In this document: positions 30,197 to 56,698 of the stretch, piece by piece
Position numbering within the stretch: the stretch's first letter is position 1
Layout of the letters: each line of letters opens with the position of its first letter
DNA from: Ranitomeya imitator
Lineage: Eukaryota
DNA: 64,000 nucleotides
Reading direction: 5' to 3'
Assembly: GCF_032444005.1 (NCBI RefSeq)
Contig: NC_091283.1
Coordinates: forward strand, 613,428,001 to 613,492,000
The notes under the pieces: generated by a model
Databases searched by the model: none
What the model saw: the letters and a program-made list of their open reading frames with translations, nothing else
Told to the model about the DNA's origin: nothing
Made by a program: the position numbers and the translations under genes

Positions 30197-32311
30197 CTAG
30201 ATGGTGGCCCGATTCTATGCATGTCCACGTAGTATATTGCCCAGCCACGTAGTATATTGCCCAGCCATGTAGTATATTGCCCAGTAATGTAGTATACAGC
30301 ACACAGCCACGTAGTATATTGCCCAGTGACGTAGTATACAGCACACAGCCACGTAGTATATTGCCCAGTTACGTAGTATATTGCCCAGTGACGTAGTATA
30401 TTGCTCAGTGACGTAGTATATTGCCCAGTGACGTAGTATATTGCCCAGTCATGTAGTATATTGCCCAGCCACGTAGTATATTGCCCAGCCACGTAGTATA
30501 TTGCCCAGCCACGTAGTATGTTGCCCAGTGACGTAGTATACAGCACACAGCCATGTAGTATATTACCCAGTGACGTAGTATATTGCCCAGTTACGTAGTA
30601 TATTGCCCAGCCACGTAGTATATTGCCCAGCCACGTAGTATATTGCCCAGCCACGTAGTATATTGCCCAGTGACGTAGTATATTGCCCAGTGACGTAGTA
30701 TATTGCCCAGTCATGTAGTATATTGCCCAGCCACCTAGTATATTGCCCAGCCACGTAGTATATTGCCCAGCCACGTAGTATATTGCCCAGTGACGTAGTA
30801 TATTGCCCAGCCACGTAGTATATTGCCCAGCCACATAGCACATAGTATATTGCCCAGTTACGTAGTATATTGCCCAGCCACGTAGTATATTGCCCAGTGA
30901 CGAAGTATATTGCCCAGTGACGTAGTATATTGCCCAGCCACGTAGTATATTGCCCAGTGACGTAGTATACAGCACACAGCCACGTAGTATAATGCCCACC
31001 AACGTAGTATATTGCCCAGCCACGTAGTATATTGCCCAGCCACGTAGTATATTGCCCAGCCACGTAGTATATTGCCCAGCCATGTAGTATATTGCCCAGT
31101 GACGTAGTATATTGCCCAGTGACGTAGTATATTGCCCAGTCATGTAGTATATTGCCCAGCCACGTAGTATATTGCCCAGTGATGTAGTATATTGCCCAGC
31201 CACGTAGTATATTGCCCAGCCACATAGCACATAGTATATTGCCCAGTTACATAGTATATTGCCCAGCCACGTAGTATATTGCCCAGTGACGAAGTATATT
31301 GCCCAGTGACGTAGTATATTGCCCAGCCACGTAGTATATTGCCCAGTGACGTAGTATACAGCACACAGCCACGTAGTATATTGCCCAGTGACGTAGTATA
31401 TTGCCCAGCCACGTAGTATATTGCCCAGCCACGTAGTATATTGCCTAGTGACGTAGTATATTGCCCAGCTACGTAGTATATTGGCCAGTGACGTAGTATA
31501 TTGCCCAGTCATGTAGTATATTGCCCAGTGACGTACTATATTGCACAGCGACATAGTATACAGCACAGAGCCACGTAGTAGATTGCCCAGTGACGTAGTA
31601 TATTGCCCAGCCACGTATGTCACAGGTTAAAAAATAAAAAATAAACATACTCACCTAACGATCCGAGGGCCCCTTGTAGTTCTAACATACTCACCATTCT
31701 CGTCGCTGCTCCTCAGCGTCCTGTCTTTCCGCCTCCTGGGGTCCAGCGGAGCTCCGGCGATAGGCGCGCGGCTGCCGCCATCTTGCGTTCCCAGGATGCA
31801 TTGCGAAATTACCCAGATGACTTAGCGGTCTCGCGAGACTGCTAGGTCTTCTGGGTAATTTCGCAAAGCATCGCTGGGAAAGGAAGATGGCGGCAGGCGC
31901 GAGCAGCTCAGCGGACAACGGAGGGTGAGTATAGCAGGTTTTTTTTTTTATATTATTATTTTTAACATTACTTTTTTTACTATTGATGCCGCATAGGCAG
32001 CATCAATAGTAAAAGGTTGGGGACACACAGGGTTAATAGCGGCGGTAACAGAGTGCGTTACCCGCGGCATAACGCGGACCGTTACCGCCGGCATTAACCC
32101 TGCGTTAGCGGTGACCAGAGGGGAGTATGCGGGCGACAGGCACTGACTGCGGGGAGTAAGGAGCGGCCATTTTCTTCTGGACTGTGCCCGTCGCTGATTG
32201 GTCGCGGCAGCCATGACAGGTAGCTGGCTAGACCAATCAGCGAATGAATAACCGTGACAGACAGAAGGACAGACAGACAGACGGAAGTGACCCTTAGACT
32301 ATTATTATATA
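30197..32311 (-). mobile_element. Non-autonomous Helitron-like element containing a 21-bp minisatellite
   Basis: Minus-strand 3' end ...CGGGCCACCATCTAG|T; 5' end TATATAATAATAGTCTAAGGGTCACTTCCGTCTGTCTGTC; no TIR or TSD. Confidence 0.65.
30225..31620. repeat. 21-bp minisatellite (GCC/GTG)ACGTAGTATATTGCCCA
   Basis: About 65 directly visible units. Confidence 0.97.
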
Positions 32312-37808: not shown

Positions 37809-38301
37809 CTGTGCAACATACAAGCAGATATCATTGAAATTCCATGTTCCATCAGTAATATAAGACATTAACCCATGAAATCACACAATCTGGCCATTTA
37901 TGATGGCCACTGCTGACAAAATGCAGAAAGAAGTAGAAGGAGATATAAAAAAAAACAGGATTTTTGGTTGCTTACCGTAAAATCTGTTTATCGGAGCCTT
38001 CATTGGGGGACACAGGAACCATGGGTGTATGCTGCTGCCACTAGGAGGCTGACACTATGCAAATAAAAAGTTAGCTCCTCCTCTGCAGTATACACCCTAC
38101 CGACAGGAAGTAGGATATTCAGTTAGTGAGAAAGCAGTAGGAGAAGCAACGTGTAAAAGAGGAATAATAATAATAAACTTTATTCACATAGCGCCAACAA
38201 ATTCTACGGCGCTCCATAGATTAACAGTTTCAAACACTCGAAGAGTGTTCAAAGAACTCAAACGTATACAGTAAACAGAGCTGTTCAACTTGGGAGGGTG
38301 C

Positions 38302-38402
38302 TGTGTCCCCCAATGAAGGCTCCGAGAAACAGATTTTACGGTAAGCAACCAAAAATCCTGTTTTCTCTATCGCCTTTCATTGGGGGACACAGGAACCATG
38401 GG
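38302..38402. repeat. DIRS internal complementary region (ICR)
   Basis: Reads as the right-terminus extension joined to the left-terminus start (...AAAAATCCTG TTTT CTCTATCGCCTTTC...). Confidence 0.92.
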
Positions 38403-38419
38403 ACGTCCCAAAGCAGTCC

Positions 38420-39150
38420 CTGGGGTGGGAAAAACCGACTTCCATCAGGTCCGAGGACTCACCACTGCCGCCTGCAGGATCCTTCTGCCCAGGCTGGAGT
38501 CCGCCGTAGTTCGGCGAAACGTGTGGATGGAAGACCAGGTGCCGCTTGCAAAGCCGTCAGCGATAACCCTGTGACGTACCGCACTGGAAGCGCCGACTGC
38601 CCGGGTAGAGTGAGCCTTTATCTCAGGAGGGGGCACTCTTGTTCTTGACCCGGTAAAGCTTCCAAAATTGCCGATCTGATAGAGCGAGCAATAGTCGCCA
38701 TTGCCGATCTGATAGAGCGAGCAATAGTCGCCTTGGAAGTCGGCAGGCCTCTACGCACGCCATCAGGGATGGCGAAAAGAGAATCCATCTTTCGGAAAAC
38801 GGCTGTGCTAGCCAGGGAGATCCTCACTGCCCTGACGAGGCCCAGCCTGTTCAACGATCACTCCAGAGGAGGAATCGGAGCTGGACAAAAGGAAAGGTAT
38901 AACGATGTCCTCGTTGAGGTGGAAAGATGAAAAACCACCTCGAGAAAGGAAGGAAGGCAGAGGCCTGGGACCACCTTGTCCTGGTTTAAAATCAAAAAAG
39001 GAGGTCGGCAAGAAGCGGCCGCCAACTCAAAAACGCGGCGGATCAAAAAGATGGACCTGAGAAAAGTCACCTTCCGAGATAGAACTGACAGGGAAAACTC
39101 CCTGAGAGGCTCAAAGGGGGGAACCCCTAAGCACAACCAATCCAACCTAT
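38420..39150 (-). pseudogene. DIRS tyrosine recombinase, frameshifted
   Basis: RRVFELAAASCRPPFL, DSLFAIPDG..., KAHSTRAVGAS and WSSIHTFRR spread over several frames. Confidence 0.85.
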
Positions 39151-42100
39151 AAATCCCATGAATCCACAGAGGCCCTGTACGGAGGGACAGCGTGGGCTAC
39201 TCCTTGAAGGGAGGTCTTAACCTGTGGCTGAGAAGATAAAGTCTTCTGAAAGGGAAGAAGAGCGCAGGAACCTGGTCCTTTAGGGAACTAAGAGCGAAGC
39301 CCGAATCCAGCCCTGCCTGAAGGAAAACCAAATGGAAAGCAGGGAAAAAGGACATAGGTGAAAAGTGGTTGGACTCGCATCAACGAAAGTAAGCCTTCCA
39401 GGTACGATAGTAGATCCTGGAAGAAGACAAAGGCTTCCCAGCCTGGATTATAGAGTGACTCATCTGGGCCGAAAGGCCGGACGCTCTTAGAACTGTGGAG
39501 TCCACAGCCACGCCGTTAAACTGAGCGACCGATAATTCGGGTGGCAGATCGGACCCTGAGACAGCAGATCGGGTCCGCCCGGAAGACACCAGGGGTGTCC
39601 GCGGAAGATTGGCGATGTCTGCAAACTAAGACCTCCTTGGCCAATCCGGGACGATCAGAATGACCGGCACCCATCCAGCCTTGATCTTTTTCGACAGCTT
39701 GGAAAGCAAGGGAAGGCGTGGGAACCGATAGGGGAGCCCGAACTGCGACCGAGGAATGGCCAGAGAGACAACACCACTGAGAGGATCACGGGACCCTGGG
39801 CCGACCCGAGGGACCTCCTGTTCAATGGGGACGCCATGAGGTCCACCTCTGGAGTCCCCCATCGAAGAGCAATCCGATAGGAAACCTCCTGAAGTACCAT
39901 TCCCCTGCCGCGAGGCCCTCGCGGCCGAGGAAGTCGGCGGCCTAAATGTCCACGCCGGGGACATGCACTGCGGAGCTCACCAGGACCGTTGCCTCTGTCC
40001 AAAGGAGGGTCCTGGAATCTCGGCCGAGGCCAGCGAACGCCGAGTCCACCCCTGGTGGTAGACATATGCACTGCTGTGTCATTGTCTGTCTGGATTCGAA
40101 TTGGCAGGCTGCTGAGAATCCTTACCCAGTGAAGGAAAGACAGAAAAGATGATCCGGGACTCGAGGACATTGATCGGCAAAGGAGGCTCCTGCACCGACC
40201 AACAACCCTGAAAGAACAGGAGACAAAGCCCCGCGCCTCCGCGAGCGGACAGGCGTCCGTCGTCACCACCTGCAAGGGAACTGGAAGGAAGGATATGCTG
40301 TGAAGGATCTACTCTGGGATAAGAGAAGTGACCTCGGCCACCAGTCGAGGAACCATTTGACCTGGGAGAAAGCCGGATCGGACGATGCAGGGAGAAGACA
40401 GACCTGTACCCTGCGATAAAATAGCCTGCTGAAGAAGTCTTGAAAGAAACGGGCGAAGGGCAAACTGCTTCCGATGTTGCAACCAAACCTCCTTAGGGCC
40501 GAGAACCCTGGAGCAAGCGAACTTCCTGACAAAGGAGGGATATCCTGTCCTCGGGAAGGAAGACTCTGGTCCGACAAGTGTCGAAGAACATGCCCAGAGA
40601 TACGAGACGCTGAACAAGACGGAACTTCTTCCTGTTGATGAGCCACCCGCAACGGTTAGAATGTCGGAAAAGATGGATAGACTTTCGGGAGCCTGAAACC
40701 GAAATTCCTGAGCCTCCATGAAAGTGATTACTGAACGAGGGAATATCATCCTGAAGTGTCTCCGACGAAACTTCCTGTACAGCAAATGGAGATCCGGACT
40801 GGGACGAACCTTGCTGTCCTCTGTCAGTACAGAAAGATTCGAAGAGAAGCCTGTGAACCAATGAACCATTCCTGTTCTGGGACGGGAACGTTTACCCCAG
40901 ATTTAAGGAGGGAAACAATGGCTGTAAAGAAACCCGGGACTAGAGCGGGGTCTCTTGGAGGTTGGGATTTGAAGAAAACGATCCCAGGACCGTGAAATGA
41001 AGATTTTGTATCTAGAGGATACAAGTGCCCTGGCCCATGTGCCCTCTACTGAGGAGACCCAGACGTCCCTGAGGAACAGGAGACGGTTGCCCGGTCTGAG
41101 AAACGGGCTGGGGCCTAGTCGTGGGTCATGCCTAGGTGGAACTTCCAGTCCTGGACCTGGAGAATCCACCTTAGGAGTAGCAGGCACGCCAGGAAAGAGT
41201 GAGTCGAAGAATACCTTCTTCTATCTAACGTGCCAGAGGCCTCTGCTGTTGCGAAGAGGAATCTGATGCCGCAAAACTACGAAAAAGGTCAAAAAGACCG
41301 AAGTAGCCGCCTAAGGGGAAGTAGGCGAGGTCTGGAGAAGGGGACTGGTGCCGCCAGTGTCGTCCTTAATAAATTTGGTCCAGCTTGGAACCGAAAAGGA
41401 CGTGAACCCTGAAAAGGCAGACTCGTAAGGGACTTCTTTGATGACTCTTGAGCCAAATAGTGCGACAGCTGGCAACAACATTACTGGACGCCTGTGCGGC
41501 AGAAGACGCGACGTCCAGGGCACAAATTATTCCCCGGCGTGAGAAATCTGGGAGGCAAGTTCCGCCAGCCGACCTGATGGAGCTCCAGCTTGAATGCCCC
41601 AACGGAGTTGTTTAGCCCCTCGGATACAGACTTCGAAACCCAAGTGGAAGCCCAAGCTGGGCATTGGGATGATTCGGCAGTTTTGAGAGCCGACTTCACG
41701 AAGGATTCCATGATCCTATCGATGGAATCTTTCAGAGCCGCCCACCGGACAGCGTAAGGACTGTGTTGGTGGCAAGTTTAGCAGCCGACGGATCCACAGG
41801 GGGAGAGGTCGTTCTCTAACGCCTCTCATTCCGGTTGGCAATGAGATCCGGAGGAAAGAGATATGAGACTCCAAGACTGTCTCTTTGAGAACGTCTGGTC
41901 GAATTCGCTCTTTCTCTGGACAGAAGCTCCTTGAATTCAGGATGAGGAGCAAATACCTTGGGAGGTAGCTTGGACCGTCTAAACGAAACCGCCTGATCTG
42001 CGGGTTTCGTAGAGGAATCTTTGATGCCACAGGTCTGATTGGTCGCTCCAATGAGGCTTTGAACCATATCCCTCATGTTAGCGATTTGGTTCGAATCCGG

Positions 42101-44124
42101 CCGCAAATTATCCTCCGAAGGCGTATCAGAGAATGCCTCGCCTGACTCAGGGGAGGAGGATCGGGAGGACGCCGACTGCAGAGGAGGACCGAGTGTCGAG
42201 ATGGAGCGAGAAGAGGACTCAGACTGGCATTCCTGTCTGGACCTTTTTCAGCTAGCCTTGGAGGGCTCGGACGGAGCTTTCAGCGACCCGGTGGCTACTG
42301 CGGGGGTCTGCAGGGGTAACCGATCCAGCACGGACACCAGGGTTGAGACACCCGTGTTAGATTGGCCACCGATTGAGACGGAGAGGAGGCCCAGCCTGGG
42401 ACTGGGGAATCACTCTCGGGCGGATCGGCTGGGGGATCCTGGGCGGTGGGCACAATCGGGTTGCTGCAGGAGTAGGAAGACGAAAATGGCCCCCTTTTTT
42501 GCCCGAGTGGATAGAGGGCAGGGGGGAGGTGGGGGCAGAGGGGAGTGTCGGTCTGCAGAGCAGAACTACTCACGGTAGACGAAAAACGGGATCCGGAGGA
42601 CGCTGTTCGGCTTGATAGGATGGGCCTCCGGTAAGAAGTCGTCTTTTAGGCAGGAGGGTGATATGAGCTCCTGCCGCAAATTGGACCGATCTGCGGATGT
42701 GACCGCGGTATGGGCTCCTGAGATGTGGCGACGGATGAGAGGTGCATGTAAAGGAGTCCCAAGATGGCGCCAGTGGGCGGAGAGAAGGCGGGCCGCAGTG
42801 AAAATGTCGGGCGGGAGAAAAGCCCGCCCGATGAGAGAAGAAAGGGGGCGGAGTCTGGCACCGGAAGTAGGCCCAGGCAGAAGCCGGGGCCTAAATTAGC
42901 GATCGGTGCCGGCATGGAAGGGCCGCAGCGGTGAACAGTGCGCCGCAGAAAGCGATAGGTGAGCGGCCGCCTACAGCGGCGGGAGTAGCGCAGCCGCCGG
43001 TCCAAAGCGGTGAGGCGGTCTGGCAAGCCGCCACGCTGAGGGAGGATGCGCGGCGCTGTAAGCGGCCAGAGGGACGCAGCTGCAGGGGGCCCGATTAGCG
43101 ATGCGGCGGCCGTGCTGAAAAGAAATGAACAGCCGCATACAGCGGCCGGAGCAGGGAAGCCACAGCGATGCGGCGGCTGGTAAGCTGCCGCGCTGAAAGG
43201 AAATGAACGGCCGCATACAGCGGCCGGAGCAGGGGAGCCACTGAGGGCCGCGCTAAAGCTGGGGCTGGATAGAGGGCAGGGGGGGGGGGGGGTGGGAAGC
43301 CTGCAGGACCCGAGGCGGGAATGTCCTCCCCTGAGCACGGCCACGCAGATAGCGTGCCCGGACAAGAAGCGGCGCGGTGTTCCGTAAAGGCAGCCGCGCC
43401 GGAACAGGGGACAGGGAGGCCGCATCCACGGAAGTGGCGCGGCTGAAAAGAGATGCGATTCGCATCAGAAAACCCCTAAATAGGAACCCCCTTTTTAGGA
43501 TCCAGGGAAGCCACAGGGTGGGGAGGGAAAATACTCACCTAAACATCCCCCGCCGGTACTAACCTGGAAGGAATGAGACGTCCACGGAGCTGATGGACGT
43601 CCTCGTCTCCTCCGACCGACAGGCTCTGGTGGGCGAGTGGGTGGGGGATGGAGCCAGGACCGGACTTCTAAGCACGCTTGTGTGCTAGGATCTTGGTCCT
43701 GGTGAGGGATCTATGAGGATACGGGGTGGCAGTACACGCCGTACTCATAGTCCACATTGTGGGACTACAGGTGTGACTGTTCACCCTGTATCCCTCCGGA
43801 AAAACCTGAAAGGAAACGACGCACATTGAGGTAGATAAGGGTCTAATGAAAGACCCGTGTCCACCTCCTACTGACACTAAGCTAAACTGAATATCCTACT
43901 TCCTGTCGGTAGGGTGTATACTGCAGAGGAGGAGCTAACTTTTTATTTGCATAGTGTCAGCCTCCTAGTGGCAGCAGCATACACCCATGGTTCCTGTGTC
44001 CCCCAATGAAAGGCGATAGAGAAAGCCAAAGAAGCTCCATGTCTCATCAACACTTGAACTCATTTACACGCGAATTGGTAACTGAGGTTTGAGATTTTAA
44101 ACTTTACATGGAACTACATATTAA

Positions 44125-53000: not shown

Positions 53001-54241
53001 CAGGCTATTCAACAACTACGAAGCAGCCAGAAAACCTTCAAGCAGGCCAAACACCAGACATGAGGTGGCATGGCAAATAGGCGACATGAGGATATACCCA
53101 AGGTGGCAGGCCAACACCAGACATGACACAACAGGCCATAACACTGGACATGAGGCGGTCAGCCCAACAAACAAAACATGAGGCCAGACATGAGGCAGCC
53201 GGCCCAACATACAAGACATGAAGCCAATCATGAGGCGGCCAGCCCAAAACATGAGGCCAGTGGCCAACCACAACACATGCTTTAAGATTCATACAGAGAA
53301 GATGAACACCAAGCACTGCTGAGAACGGATCTCAGGATCTCCTGCTCACGAGACAGGTGCCCCAAACCAAGGTGCAGTCTAAACAAGAAATGCAAATCTG
53401 CAAGGTCAACGAGGAACGCCAGGCTACAAGGCCACACGAGAGGACAAGTGGAAATCACAAGCCACTGTAGAAGCGAAAACACAAGGCTGCAGGCCCATCG
53501 AAACACAAGGCCTGAAGTATTATATCTAGATTCTCCCAAAGTGAAGTTAGCATTTCAGCACCCAACTGGGCCCCTGTACGCATTGCCATTCCTACTAGAC
53601 TTTGCTATAGAACACACCATGTTGTTCCATGATTCACGGCTGCACCAGCTGTGTGCTCAAGACTTCTACACCAAAGGACAGAAAAACACATTTAAGAAGA
53701 AAGAAGGAGGTGCCCTTTTATTTTCTGCTCTTGGTTTCTGTCCAGTAATAGGGGCAGATCCCACTCTCTCAAATGCTGTCATGGGTGAGGAGAAAAAGAT
53801 GATCTCTTTTACTATTAATGGCATGAATAGTATTATGTCTTTTACAATGTATAGCTTGATAAAATGCAGTTTGTAGCCAAGTCATAGTTTTGTTTTTTCG
53901 ATATATGTTGTGATTAATAATAACGTCACTCCGGAAAAACATCCGGTTGCCTCGAGAGAGCACAGAGTTAAGGGAGTGGTGAATGGGAATCATCTACTAC
54001 ATACTTTTACTATAATCTCAATTCAGTAAGTGCAACCCGATGGCCGATAATAAATGAAATGTCTGTTTTCACTGATAACTTTATGCATCTTTCTATAACA
54101 TTTCCTCATAGTCTGAAGACCCCTGCTTGTTGTCATTGAAAGGAAACCTTTGGTGCTAGTGCACAGCTTGTAAAGGGACATGTGATCCCACTGTACAGTG
54201 TAGAGGTTTGTACCTATGTGATCACAGTAGACCAGAATATA

Positions 54242-56113
54242 CAGTGGAGGAAACAATTATTTGATCCCTTGCTGATTTTGTAAGTTTGCCCACTGACAAA
54301 GACATGAACATTCTATAATTTTAAGGGTAGGTTAATTTTTATATTGAGAGATAGAATATCAAAAATAAAATCCAGAAAATCACATTGTATAAATTCTGTA
54401 AATGTATTTGCATTTTGCAGTGATAAATGAGTATTTGATCCCTCTGGCAAACAAGGCTTAATACTTGGTGGCAAAAACCCTTGTTGGCAAGCACACCAGT
54501 CAGATGTTATTTATAGTTGATGATGAGGTTTGCACACATGTGAGGAGGAATTTTGGTCCACTCCTCTTTGCAGATCATCTCTAAATCATTAAGATTTTGA
54601 GGCTGTCACTTGGCAACTCAGAGCTTCAACTCCCTCCATAAGTTTTCTATGGGATTAAGGTTTGGAGACTGGCTAGGCCACTTCATGAACTTAATGTGCT
54701 TCTTTGTGAGCCACTCCTTTGTTGCCTTGGCTGTATGTTTTGGGTCATTGTCTTGCTGGAAGACTGTTGTGAATTCTGTGGCCAAGCTCCCTCCTGTGGT
54801 CGTGAGTGGTACTGCGGCTGGTTCTGTCTATAAGCTTCCTTTGGTGGATGAGAGTGGTACTGCGGCTTCTGAGTTTCCTTCCTCAGGTGATGTGGTTAAG
54901 TCGTTAGGTGCTGCTCTATTTAACTCCACCTGGTGCTTTGATCCTGGCCTCCAGTCAATGTTCTAGTATTGGTCTTGCTTCCTCCTGGATCGTTCCTGTG
55001 GCCTCTCTATCCTGCATAAGCTAAGTTCTGCTTGTGTTATTTTTGTTTGCTATATTTTCTGTCCAGCTTGCTATATTGGTTTTTTCTTGCTTGCTGGAAG
55101 CTCTGAGACGCAGAGGGAGCACCTCCGTACCGTTAGTCGGTGCGGAGGGTCTTTTTGCCCCTCTGCGTGGTTGTTTGTAGGTTTTTGTGTTGACCGCAAA
55201 GCTATCTTTCCTATCCTCGGTCTATTCAGTAAGTCGGGCCTCACTTTGCTAAATCTATTTCATCTCTGTGTTTGTATTTCATCTTTACTCACAGTCATTA
55301 TATGTGGGGGGCTGCCTTTTCCTTTGGGGAATTTCTCTGAGGCAAGGTAGGCTTATTTTTCTATCTTCAGGGCTAGTAAGTTTCTCAGGCTATGCCGAGT
55401 TGCATAGGGAGCGTTAGGCGCAATCCACGGCTACCTCTAGTGTGGTGTGTTAGGATTAGGGATTGCGGTCAGCAGAGTTTCCACGTCTCAGAGCTTGTCC
55501 TATGTTTTTGGTAAATGACAGGTCACCTTGTGTGCTCTGAACTTCAAGGTCCATTGTGGTTCTAAATTACCTGTTCATAACAGTACTGGAGGCCAGGATC
55601 AAAGCACCAGGTGGAGTTAAATAGAGCAGCACCTAACGACTTAACCACATCACCTGAGGAAGGAAACTCAGAAGCCGCAGTACCACTCTCATCCACCAAA
55701 GGAAGCTTATAGACAGAACCAGCCGCAGTACCACTCACAACCACAGGAGGGAGCTTGGCCACAGAATTCACAACAGAAGACCCAGCCACGACCCATTTTT
55801 AACCCCTTTCTAACCTCGGATGGAATAGTACGTCCGAGGTCAGAACCCCCGCTTTGATGTGGGCTCCGGAGGTGAGCCCGCATCAAAGCCGGGACATGTC
55901 AGCTGTTTTGTACAGCTGACATGTGCACGCAATAGCGGCGGGTGGAATCGCTATTATATAATTTATACAATGTGATATTCTGGATTTTATTTTTGATATT
56001 CTATCTCTCAATGTTAAATTTAACCGACCCTTAAAATTATAGACTGTTCATGTCTTTGTCAGGGGGAAAACTTACAAAATCAGCAAGGGATCAAATACTT
56101 ATTTTCCCCACTG
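54242..56113 (-). mobile_element. Internally deleted Tc1 hosting the fold-back LTR insertion and a piggyBac-MITE fragment
   Basis: TA-CAGTGG...CCACTG-TA long TIRs; the Tc1 sequence resumes after the duplicated GAAGAC. Confidence 0.88.
54765..55775 (+). mobile_element. LTR + PBS + inverted U3 (fold-back derivative of a self-priming LTR retrotransposon)
   Basis: LTR 54765-55582 (TG...CA), then GT, then a 191-bp inverted copy (55585-55775) of 54765-54955; 6-bp TSD GAAGAC. Confidence 0.88.
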
Positions 56114-56259
56114 TATTCTTGACCTCTGGATTTGCATTCAATGAATACTACTATGTGAGGGGCTGATAATGGTGATAGCCAATGGCATAAGGAGTGTCAT
56201 CTAAGCCAATCACCTGTTTATTGGGTTGTTTTCAGGTGTTGCAGTTGAGGTGCTGTTAA

Positions 56260-56698
56260 AGGGAATCTGTCACTGTTTTTTGCTGCCTCATCTAAAAGTA
56301 TCATAATATAGGGGCAGATACCCTAACTTCAGTGATGTGCCACTTACTGGGCTGCTTGCTATTATTTTGATAAAATCACAGTTTTATCTGCTGTAGATCT
56401 AGCATTTCTCTGATTACTGAGCTCTGTATAACCCCGCCCATATCACTGATTGGCAGCTTTCACCGAAAAGCTGCCAATCAGTGGTGGGGGTGGGGTTATA
56501 CAGAGCTCATGAATAAGGAGGACTACAGGCTTACTAGTCCTCTTTTGATAATCTGCTTCTGATAAATCGGTGATTGTATCAAAATATACTAACTATACTA
56601 AGCAGCCCAGTAAGTGATGCATTGCTGTAATCAGGGTCTCTGGCCCTACAATATTCTGCACAAAGTATAGGTGGGAAAAACCTGGTGACCAATTCCCT
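56260..56698. mobile_element. T2/Kolobok-type MITE
   Basis: TTAA-AGGGAATCTGTCAC...GTGACCAATTCCCT-TTAA. Confidence 0.85.

Follow-up and report, generated by a model that had tools for sequence, protein, structure and literature searches.

What kind of event can leave an LTR in a genome with a U3 terminus at both of its outer ends? The question is raised by an insertion of 1,011 bases in the genome of Ranitomeya imitator, at positions 54765-55775 of the window, i.e. the whole stretch of 64,000 nucleotides that was analysed, in which the order is LTR, GT, PBS and inverted U3. The answer favoured here, with a probability of roughly 0.65, is a copy-back of U3 primed by the PBS on plus-sense DNA, either intramolecular or between two strong-stop DNAs, followed by an integrase-type insertion via the two U3 ends. 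The features on which the analysis is based are collected in Table 1.

Table 1. Features of the unit, its target site and the comparison element (window positions).
Feature	Position	Strand	Basis or remark
Comparison element of a related self-priming family (family 2)	1-2214	-	5' LTR from 2214 down to ~1470, then GT and PBS ATCGCCGGC
Host, decayed Tc1/mariner-type element	54239-56116	-	163-nt terminal inverted repeats 54239-54401 and 55954-56116 (91%)
Left copy of the target site duplication (TSD), GAAGAC, 6 bp	54759-54764	.	Sequence and empty-site contigs
LTR, complete (TGTTGTG...ATAACA; end TTCATAACA)	54765-55582	+	Sequence; very high-copy family
Predicted U3; with 54946-54955 the left arm of the inverted repeat	54765-54945	+	U3/R border placed by TATA spacing
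Putative TATA box, TATTTAA	54917-54923	+	Motif and spacing shared with the related family
GGCCTCCAGT, predicted R start of 10 nt (self-primer), to which the PBS is exactly complementary; CAATG next	54946-54955	+	
GT, 2 nt beyond the integrated LTR end	55583-55584	+	Mirrors the AC between PPT and LTR of normal copies
PBS ACTGGAGGCC; the right arm begins with these 10 nt	55585-55594	+	
Reverse-complement copy of the whole U3, ending ...CACAACA	55595-55775	-	
Right TSD copy, GAAGAC, 6 bp	55776-55781	.	Sequence and empty-site contigs

Structure of the unit

The initial annotation had described a complete LTR followed by GT and a PBS that matches a site shortly downstream of a TATA-like motif, and the coordinates and sequences of all these parts hold, with GGCCTCCAGT starting 29 nt past the first T of TATTTAA. 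The LTR is 818 nt long; its completeness was judged from this single copy and from k-mer agreement with its family, without use of a consensus. The PBS ACTGGAGGCC, 10 nt in length, is the reverse complement of GGCCTCCAGT and runs unbroken into the reverse-complement U3. The resulting inverted arms (54765-54955 and 55585-55775) comprise 191 nt each and contain a single mismatch, as had been proposed, and a repeat search confirmed both this and the terminal ...CACAACA; the search itself returns arms of 192 nt, because the flanking C and G pair by coincidence. The sole mismatch, a C at 54801 against a T on the other arm (55739), is a CpG>TpG change, and the arms were therefore probably identical at birth. 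A complementary 10-mer is expected by chance about 8e-4 times per 818-nt LTR, and here it is placed exactly at both inner breakpoints; a chance origin of the match between PBS and R start is thus negligible. The unit has neither coding capacity nor a U5 end and is therefore presumably immobile, and we regard it as a single, immobile copy that probably has no function.

Target site and mode of insertion

The shared GAAGAC duplication that had been noted in the Tc1 sequence of the host was found in both copies, and it is supported by empty paralogous sites of the host repeat: in four public runs there are Logan contigs in which 54758 is followed directly by 55776, the 6 letters being shared. These empty sites lack exactly 1011 bp plus one 6-bp copy, and the whole unit is therefore a single insertion. 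The insertion point lies within the remnant of a DDE_3 transposase of the Tc1/mariner-type host. Both outer ends of the unit are trimmed, and the termini TGTTGTG... and ...CACAACA correspond to TG...CA. At the level of sequence, TG...CA termini and a 6-bp TSD show a single integrase-type insertion, in agreement with the proposal that a DNA with two U3 ends had been integrated. TSDs of LTR elements usually measure 4-6 bp, a range that includes the 6 bp of the unit; the 64-kb window contains no other LTR pairs or solo LTRs with which the TSD could be compared.

These data also bear on a rearrangement after integration, be it two head-to-head insertions, an inversion, or template switching or fold-back repair at the 10-bp inverted microhomology of PBS and R. 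All full-length copies contain this microhomology, which could direct a template switch, and the low-depth joints between U3 and inverted U3 discussed below indicate that some inverted LTR junctions, or library artefacts, do occur. However, two insertions would bring two different TSDs, as well as inner LTR ends instead of PBS and R, and the exact size of the deletion in the empty-site contigs also argues against a rearrangement. An ordinary element has U5 (...ATAACA) beside its right TSD, whereas here the TSD abuts the exact U3 terminus (...CACAACA), so that any rearrangement would have had to break precisely at the edge of the element. The initial annotation had named a breakpoint away from PBS and R, or an unshared TSD, as observations that would speak for such a history; the junction was found exactly at the PBS/R start, and one TSD is shared. 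A later rearrangement is accordingly considered quite improbable.

Formally, 191-bp terminal inverted repeats flanked by a TSD are the signature of a TIR-type element, and the unit could be a MITE-like element moved by a DNA transposase and built from LTR sequence by coincidence. This is hardly credible, as the interior consists of exactly one LTR, GT and PBS, the termini are the TG...CA of the LTR itself, the unit is the only copy in the window, and the junction words are missing from most of the LTR-containing runs of the species.

Support for the junction and search for further copies

Two 31-mers sampled from a 60-mer of the junction region both occur in two runs (X1 and X2) of one sample, which is flagged as a possible source of the assembly, and this support is therefore suggestive but does not amount to independent proof. 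One of the two words was also found in two further runs; most runs of the species in which the LTR is present contain neither. A further run (X16) contains exact contigs of the inverted U3 starting from 55585 and neither of the words, which are therefore not plain words of the inverted U3. Among the Logan contigs none bridges 55584-55595, the unitigs being short and breaking at the PBS.

An artefact of assembly or sequencing, either a chimeric fold-back read or a misjoin of repeats, has in its favour that the LTR family is extremely abundant, that inverted repeats are known trouble spots, that the junction words possibly come from the very data used for the assembly and that no independent read was found to span the junction. 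On the other hand, the arm stops exactly at the U3 terminus and is followed by a 6-bp duplication with the host Tc1 sequence back in register. One CpG transition separates the arms, which is unexpected in a fold-back copy of one read, an overlap of 10 nt is far too short for a misjoin of long reads, and there are no Ns nearby. We therefore rate an artefact as highly improbable.

A second unit of the LTR-PBS-inverted-U3 type was not found by repeat search in the 64-kb window. The 75-aa open reading frame that crosses the junction (55562-55789, minus strand) gave 0 candidates in the protein database, and exact patterns gave 0 matches for the LTR end with PBS in metagenome contigs and 0 matches for the junction in viral contigs. 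A 19-mer of the R start hit 11 loci in metagenomes, all of them chance matches of 19-22 nt. The Logan contigs do contain other joints of U3 to inverted U3 at low depth, which were rejected as further instances: their positions scatter, one of them lies at a 4-bp mini-hairpin (CTGG-CCT-CCAG), and they may be fold-back artefacts of library preparation in so abundant a repeat. Of the suggestion that the unit represents a distinct class of by-product, the reality of the unit itself is borne out, but the class consists of one copy, with no second instance found.

Self-priming in two LTR families

The LTR of the unit belongs to a family (family 1) of which tens of thousands of Logan contigs could be aligned with 95-100% identity. 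Normal copies also show the order LTR-GT-PBS, followed by different internal sequence; they diverge right past 55594 into CAAAGTACTAATG... or AAAAAAAGAACC..., and their 3' LTRs are preceded by a PPT, ...GGGGGGGGT-AC. From the GT after 5' LTRs and the AC before 3' LTRs it follows that the full LTR is AC-TG...CA-GT, and the internal GT of the unit is therefore an untrimmed U5 end, with both outer ends trimmed. The U3 end TGTTGTGAA and the U5 end TGTTATGAA have 8 of 9 nt in common, and two U3 ends would therefore look near-native to the integrase.

The element at the start of the window had been described as having the same layout as the unit, which was confirmed: it shows TATTTAA, 23 nt, GCCGGCGAT-CAATG, and ...TGACA-GT-ATCGCCGGC. 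It encodes a gag-protease reading frame from 1288 to the window edge, with Retrotrans_gag and an aspartyl protease. Among its database relatives, which are 66-95% identical and likewise from Ranitomeya imitator, chimeric gene models include SH3_Tf2-1, rve, RVT_1 and chromo domains. For family 1, no pol was seen. In both families CAATG follows the self-primer and ACA-GT precedes the PBS, and the position relative to TATTTAA is alike. The self-primer/PBS pair itself (GCCGGCGAT/ATCGCCGGC) differs from that of family 1 and is again complementary, which supports self-priming. In addition, the PBS of family 2 lacks the TGG that a tRNA-type PBS, pairing with a CCA end, requires. By these features the family of the unit would belong to the self-priming (Tf1/sushi-type) elements, its PBS being complementary to its own predicted transcript start, with a primer/PBS pair that covaries between the two families.

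When free plus-strand strong-stop DNA was folded with DNA parameters, its last 10 nt paired with the R start in both the MFE and the centroid structures, with predicted pairing probabilities of 0.84-0.89 for family 1 and 0.93-1.0 for family 2. Folding of the RNA leader gave predicted primer:PBS pairing probabilities of 0.87-1.0, so that this central duplex is strong. The flanking duplexes of the Tf1 'pretzel', computed with the 13 nt of normal post-PBS sequence at hand, reached -6.1 and -3.6 kcal/mol and were not better than shuffles.

Proposed origin

The starting molecule would be the plus-strand strong-stop DNA of a self-priming (Tf1/sushi-like) LTR retrotransposon, 5'-U3-R-U5-GT-PBS-3', whose 3'-terminal PBS would be complementary not just to the 3' end of the minus strand but, on plus-sense DNA, also to the initial 10 nt of R. 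This PBS end may then have found an R start to pair with, in the same molecule (snap-back) or in a second, antiparallel strong-stop DNA, and reverse transcriptase would have extended it to the 5' end of the template, adding the reverse complement of U3 and placing a U3 terminus at both ends. Finally, integrase would have removed 2 nt at both ends, which gives TG...CA, and inserted the product with a 6-bp staggered cut into the Tc1-like element. Support for the copy-back comes from the four boundaries of the unit, each a natural terminus of plus-strand strong-stop DNA: the 5' end of U3, U5 with the GT that is normally trimmed by integrase, the end of the PBS, and the copy-back to the 5' end of U3. 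Counting against it, strong-stop DNA is as a rule paired with the minus strand, and a displaced or free strand must therefore be assumed. The copy-back is, moreover, read from one instance (n=1).

The initial annotation had assumed that the strong-stop DNA annealed to itself. The complementarity of PBS and R at the junction and the predicted pairing agree with this, but a hairpin by itself is not a two-ended substrate, as it has only one double-stranded end and a single-stranded loop of 629 nt. In the hairpin variant a second strand would be required, for example one primed by the nascent PPT-primed plus strand, whereas in the intermolecular variant two strong-stop DNAs would prime each other and yield a molecule with double-stranded U3 at both ends and a bubble of non-complementary R-U5 between them. 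The sequence alone would fit both variants alike. We infer the start of R, the strand and the enzyme involved, the choice between priming within and between molecules, and the way in which the loop became duplex.

A different step of self-priming could lead to an identical LTR-GT-PBS-inverted-U3 junction, namely an over-long self-primer: a read-through RNA with U3 upstream of R, originating for instance in a tandem array whose elements share LTRs, would form the self-primer duplex and be cut after nucleotide 10 of R, the plus strand would copy this U3-bearing primer past the PBS into inverted U3, and integrase would cut at the internal CA. The integrase of Tf1 has been described as handling PBS tails on cDNA (PMC11042837), which lends this some plausibility. 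However, nothing would naturally halt synthesis at the 5' end of U3, so that it would continue into the PPT and internal sequence, and the exact right U3 terminus would need an additional, unusual internal cleavage; we consider an over-long primer unlikely. It would still be a by-product of self-priming and differ in the step only.

Comparison with known systems

Self-priming in the Tf1/sushi group is said to have been described by Levin in 1995 and 1996 and by Butler et al. in 2001. In these Ty3/gypsy elements, the 5' LTR is closely followed by a PBS that can pair with the beginning of the element's own transcript (PMC10085805, PMC6317226). The unit shares with them a PBS right after the LTR that matches its own predicted transcript start, as well as an LTR ending in CA, and relatives carry gag-protease, integrase, and Tf2-type SH3 and chromo domains, in part in chimeric gene models. 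The Tf1/sushi elements described are normal two-LTR copies, whereas the unit has the form LTR-PBS-inverted U3.

Self-priming of strong-stop DNA in HIV-1 was reportedly observed by Guo et al. in 1997. There, minus-strand strong-stop DNA primes itself via the cTAR hairpin, resulting in extended dead-end hairpins in vitro (PMC6088434). As in the proposed origin, a strong-stop DNA bends back on itself, and its 3' end is extended by reverse transcriptase. The HIV-1 case, however, concerns the minus strand and a local hairpin in vitro, is suppressed by nucleocapsid and is not seen in endogenous reactions, while the unit would involve the plus strand and a 10-nt pairing across 629 nt that is dictated by the priming mechanism, and it is integrated in the germ line. 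Hairpin ('snap-back') strong-stop DNAs of cauliflower mosaic virus, a pararetrovirus, are known from the literature of the 1980s as unintegrated by-products of reverse transcription in vivo. Unlike the unit, they are not integrated, nor is it the mode of priming that dictates their pairing.

About half of Tf1 cDNA has a single-stranded PBS tail at the 3' end, and integrase-independent insertion at PBS homology gives tandem elements without a TSD (PMC11042837). In both this case and the proposed origin, an exposed PBS 3' end of the plus strand anneals to an abnormal complementary partner, which for the Tf1 tail is chromosomal or Tf2 DNA homologous to the PBS and for the unit would be the R start of plus-sense cDNA. 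In contrast to the Tf1 insertions at PBS homology, the unit has TG...CA ends and a 6-bp TSD and is thus integrase-like.

Two further types of element were compared with the unit. A solo LTR likewise consists of one LTR without coding sequence, flanked by a TSD, but it results from recombination between LTRs and ends in U5, whereas the unit retains GT and PBS and ends in an inverted U3; with this right end, the unit is not a solo LTR. DIRS-type elements are autonomous, with inverted terminal repeats, a tyrosine recombinase and no TSD (PMC7192593, PMC3950715). They resemble the unit in being derived from retroelements and bounded by inverted repeats, and an internal complementary region is a further hallmark of theirs, but the unit has a 6-bp TSD, is non-coding and carries a Ty3/gypsy-type LTR, and a DIRS-like assignment was rejected. 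An integrated LTR-PBS-inverted-U3 product is not described in the full-text literature searched, a finding of little weight, since most papers in subscription journals, including the Tf1 originals of the 1990s, fell outside.

Implications

The unit is best read as a variant of known aberrant products of reverse transcription and, so far, as a single molecular fossil. Whether snap-back units form a recurrent class of by-products specific to self-priming LTR retrotransposons, an intrinsic cost of this mode of priming, scattered in genomes rich in Tf1/sushi elements and mis-annotated there as TIR elements or nested LTR fragments, is doubtful on present evidence; in that case, read-through transcripts with the 191-bp U3 hairpin could be a source of small RNAs that silence the family's own promoter. 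For annotation, the signature would be an LTR, 2 nt and a PBS running into inverted U3, with a TSD, which would otherwise be catalogued as a TIR element or as a set of nested fragments. If the proposed origin is true, snap-back units would be expected in self-priming families and none in tRNA-primed ones. The complementarity used for self-priming would then be a built-in liability, as with it plus-strand strong-stop DNA can use itself or a sister molecule as template. Dead-end cDNAs could still integrate, and the chromovirus integrase would accept a molecule with two U3 ends in vivo. The unit would thereby provide in vivo evidence from the germ line for points that are otherwise known from biochemistry only, or are wholly new.

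Structure of the insertion and its host element

The 1011-bp unit at 54765-55775 is a complete LTR that continues through GT plus a primer-binding site (PBS) directly into a reverse-complement copy of U3, and sequence reading together with the repeat search confirmed this layout as claimed in the initial annotation, with two inverted arms of 191 nt and one mismatch. The repeat search returns 192 nt for the arms, as an extra flanking C/G pair matches by chance. At the mismatch, which lies in CpG context, the left arm has C (54801) where the right arm has T; since CpG change is the commonest decay after insertion, the two arms most likely started out identical. U3 also contains a 48-bp tandem duplication at 54774-54867 (two 46-nt copies, 76-78% alike, ending GTGGTACTGCGGCT), of which the repeat search finds a mirror copy in the right arm.

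Positions of the parts of the unit and of the host termini
Feature	Position	Source
LTR, TGTTGTG ... TTCATAACA	54765-55582	sequence reading of window 54500-56100
GT after LTR	55583-55584	sequence reading
PBS, ACTGGAGGCC	55585-55594	sequence reading
Right arm, reverse complement of 54765-54955	55585-55775	sequence reading and repeat search
Host, decayed Tc1/mariner-type element, 163-nt terminal inverted repeats (TIRs)	54239-54401 and 55954-56116	repeat search

The unit has TG...CA termini, is set between copies of GAAGAC at 54759-54764 and 55776-55781, and splits the transposase remnant of its host, which matches Pfam DDE_3 (E = 2e-11). That GAAGAC is a 6-bp target-site duplication (TSD) in host Tc1 sequence was borne out by empty sites: contigs of four public runs join 54758 to 55776, with six letters common to both, and represent paralogues of the host repeat that have one GAAGAC and no insert. 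Therefore, the 1011 bp and the 6-bp duplication were gained in one insertion event. LTR elements usually have a TSD of 4-6 bp, a range which 6 bp fits; that of Tf1 is 5 bp. Short GC-rich, MITE-like palindromes with 20-nt and 34-nt arms and loops of 6-7 nt (repeat search) lie within and beside the host element, at 55847-55893 and 56427-56500.

Rearrangement after integration, or two insertions, is an improbable origin, because the right-hand copy of the same TSD adjoins an exact U3 tip, whereas an ordinary element ends in U5, and a rearrangement would require a breakpoint precisely at the element's edge. Self-comparison of the 64-kb window revealed no second complete LTR insertion. An assembly artefact is very improbable: the host resumes in register with the TSD, the U3 terminus is exact, the arms differ by a single CpG change, and both 31-mers sampled from 55562-55621 are present in the public sequencing runs X1 and X2, although these runs may derive from the sample that was assembled, and no read was seen to span the junction. 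The run X16 contains exact contigs of pure inverted U3 from 55585, yet neither 31-mer, so the two 31-mers are not simply LTR sequence and probably belong to the junction.

Logan contigs, assembled from X1 and X2, also join 54883-54964 to 55586-55699, that is forward to inverted U3, at varied positions and low depth (about 30-240); the mini-hairpin CTGG-CCT-CCAG at the R start forms the centre of one of them. Such joints could be other genomic fold-back LTR copies or library fold-back artefacts of an abundant repeat, and because of the latter possibility they were not counted as further instances.

The parent family and its self-priming layout

The LTR family of the unit (family 1) is hugely abundant, with tens of thousands of contigs from runs of the species and its relatives aligning at 95-100% identity. 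Ordinary copies read LTR-GT-ACTGGAGGCC, followed by CAAAGTACTAATG... or AAAAAAAGAACC... (contig ends diverging at 55594/55595), and ordinary 3' LTRs have the polypurine tract (PPT) ...AAAAAGGGGGGGGT, then AC, directly upstream (contig ends, first aligned base 54763). The break-position convention of these alignments was verified via the ordinary reverse-strand R sequence ...CATTG preceding 55585. With AC before 3' LTRs and GT after 5' LTRs, the unintegrated full LTR is AC-TG...CA-GT, and the GT ahead of the PBS represents the U5 tip, the 2 nt that outer ends lose to integrase.

The PBS exactly complements GGCCTCCAGT at 54946-54955, which begins 29 nt downstream of the initial T in TATTTAA, a spacing from which the transcript would be expected to start at GGCCTCCAGT. 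The truncated minus-strand element at 1-2214 belongs to a related family (family 2), carries a gag-protease ORF, and has an LTR 72% identical to that of family 1 over 354 bp. It reads TATTTAA, 23 nt, GCCGGCGAT-CAATG and ...TGACA-GT-ATCGCCGGC; the self-priming layout which the two elements had been said to share, both with CAATG next, is thus the same plan with a different primer/PBS pair. The primer and PBS halves changed jointly between the families, and the family 2 PBS lacks the TGG for pairing with the CCA end of a tRNA, which together are the signature of self-priming of the Tf1/sushi type (PMC10085805; PMC6317226). Two further duplexes of the Tf1 "pretzel" were, as far as testable, no better than shuffled controls.

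Among the best 28 matches, the relatives of the gag-protease ORF are Ranitomeya imitator gene models, 66-95% identical. Tf2-type SH3, integrase, RT and chromo domains occur in some of these models. The matches point to a dendrobatid poison frog or a close relative as the source of the window, and the domain content would place its elements among the chromoviruses. In poison-frog genomes, Tc1/mariner and Gypsy repeats dominate (PMC6278860). Many of the Ranitomeya imitator models P0001-P0036 combine fragments of gag/pol with host domains (RGS/PX, VWFA, CUB, kinase, EGF, others) and are probably gene-model chimeras from intronic elements.

Probable origin by copy-back of strong-stop DNA

All boundaries of the unit coincide with natural ends of plus-strand strong-stop DNA: the unit has its 5' end at the U3 tip, U5 retains its untrimmed GT, the PBS end is the copy of the primer, and the inverted segment ends exactly at the U3 tip, where a strong-stop DNA template would end. 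The minus-strand 3' end is the only partner available to the 3' PBS of this DNA in tRNA-primed elements; in self-priming elements the PBS also complements the R start on any strand of plus sense. In the most likely reading, the PBS 3' end would anneal to such an R start and be extended by reverse transcriptase, appending the inverted U3 and giving exactly the strand observed. Folding with DNA parameters placed the last 10 nt of the 830-nt family 1 strong-stop DNA on the R start in the minimum-energy and centroid structures (predicted pairing probability 0.84-0.89; 0.93-1.0 in family 2), so that a primed 3' end is predicted in free strong-stop DNA. An over-long self-primer from read-through RNA would yield the same junction, but would offer no natural stopping point at the U3 tip and appears rather unlikely. 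For copy-back of strong-stop DNA, the literature offers indirect support: about half of Tf1 particle cDNA has a single-stranded PBS 3' tail able to anneal to other homologous DNA (PMC11042837), and HIV-1 minus-strand strong-stop DNA self-primes in vitro to dead-end hairpins (PMC6088434).

The boundaries, the PBS/R complementarity and the folding agree with the intramolecular snap-back suggested in the initial annotation. However, a hairpin formed by one molecule is duplex at a single end and keeps a single-stranded loop of 629 nt, and alone it is therefore not a two-ended integration substrate. We infer two routes that could complete the molecule. Either a nascent PPT-primed plus strand of U3 sense would pair with the new inverted U3 tail and prime a second strand throughout, or two strong-stop DNAs, derived for instance from the pair of packaged genomes or from strand-displacing re-priming, would lie antiparallel, each PBS exactly opposite the other's R start, and both 3' ends would be extended. 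The latter product would be linear, with two blunt duplex U3 ends flanking a non-complementary R-U5 bubble, which replication after integration would resolve into the observed structure. By either route, both ends of the molecule would be U3 tips. The U3 and U5 tips match at 8 of their first 9 bases (TGTTGTGAA and TGTTATGAA), and, like ends processed by integrase, the outer ends of the unit are missing the 2-nt AC/GT extension. In vitro, U3/U3 donor DNA is a substrate that retroviral integrases accept.

Other repeats in the window

A tandem array with a 30-bp period occupies 9640-17330 (about 7.7 kb; a 300-nt block repeated in register around 200 times, core 88-98% alike) beside assembly gaps, with N runs just upstream at 8179-8324, 8445-8611 and 8619-9162. 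Two more tandem-repeat blocks, at 30225-31617 and 20025-21359, match themselves with 80-90% identity at many different offsets. An inverted repeat of 126 nt with perfect (100%) identity, at 37999-38124 and 43885-44010 and with arms 5760 nt apart, probably marks the two ends of a young mobile element, perhaps DIRS-like or a DNA transposon; the four ORFs of at least 150 aa inside it (37999-44010) had no Pfam match.

Comparison with known systems

The parent element works like the Tf1/sushi self-priming group and, as far as testable, belongs with it. The unit is not a solo LTR, since its right end is wrong for one, and not DIRS-like, since it has a TSD and lacks a coding region. Nor is it demonstrably a TIR transposon: a TIR-type DNA transposon made of LTR sequence is extremely improbable given an interior of exactly LTR, GT and PBS. 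The 75-aa minus-strand ORF that crosses the junction (55562-55789) has no counterpart in the protein database that would point to a second copy. The unit resembles retroviral self-primed strong-stop hairpins, but differs in the strand involved, in a pairing that follows from the priming mechanism itself, and in being integrated in a germ line. No published description of such an integrated product was found in the full-text literature searched, in which older Tf1 papers are thinly covered, so that this is weak evidence of novelty. Known from one copy, the unit is best described as a product of aberrant reverse transcription in a known type of element, with a probable copy-back mechanism inferred from its structure; it is mechanistically telling and provides a sharp and cheap genome-wide test.
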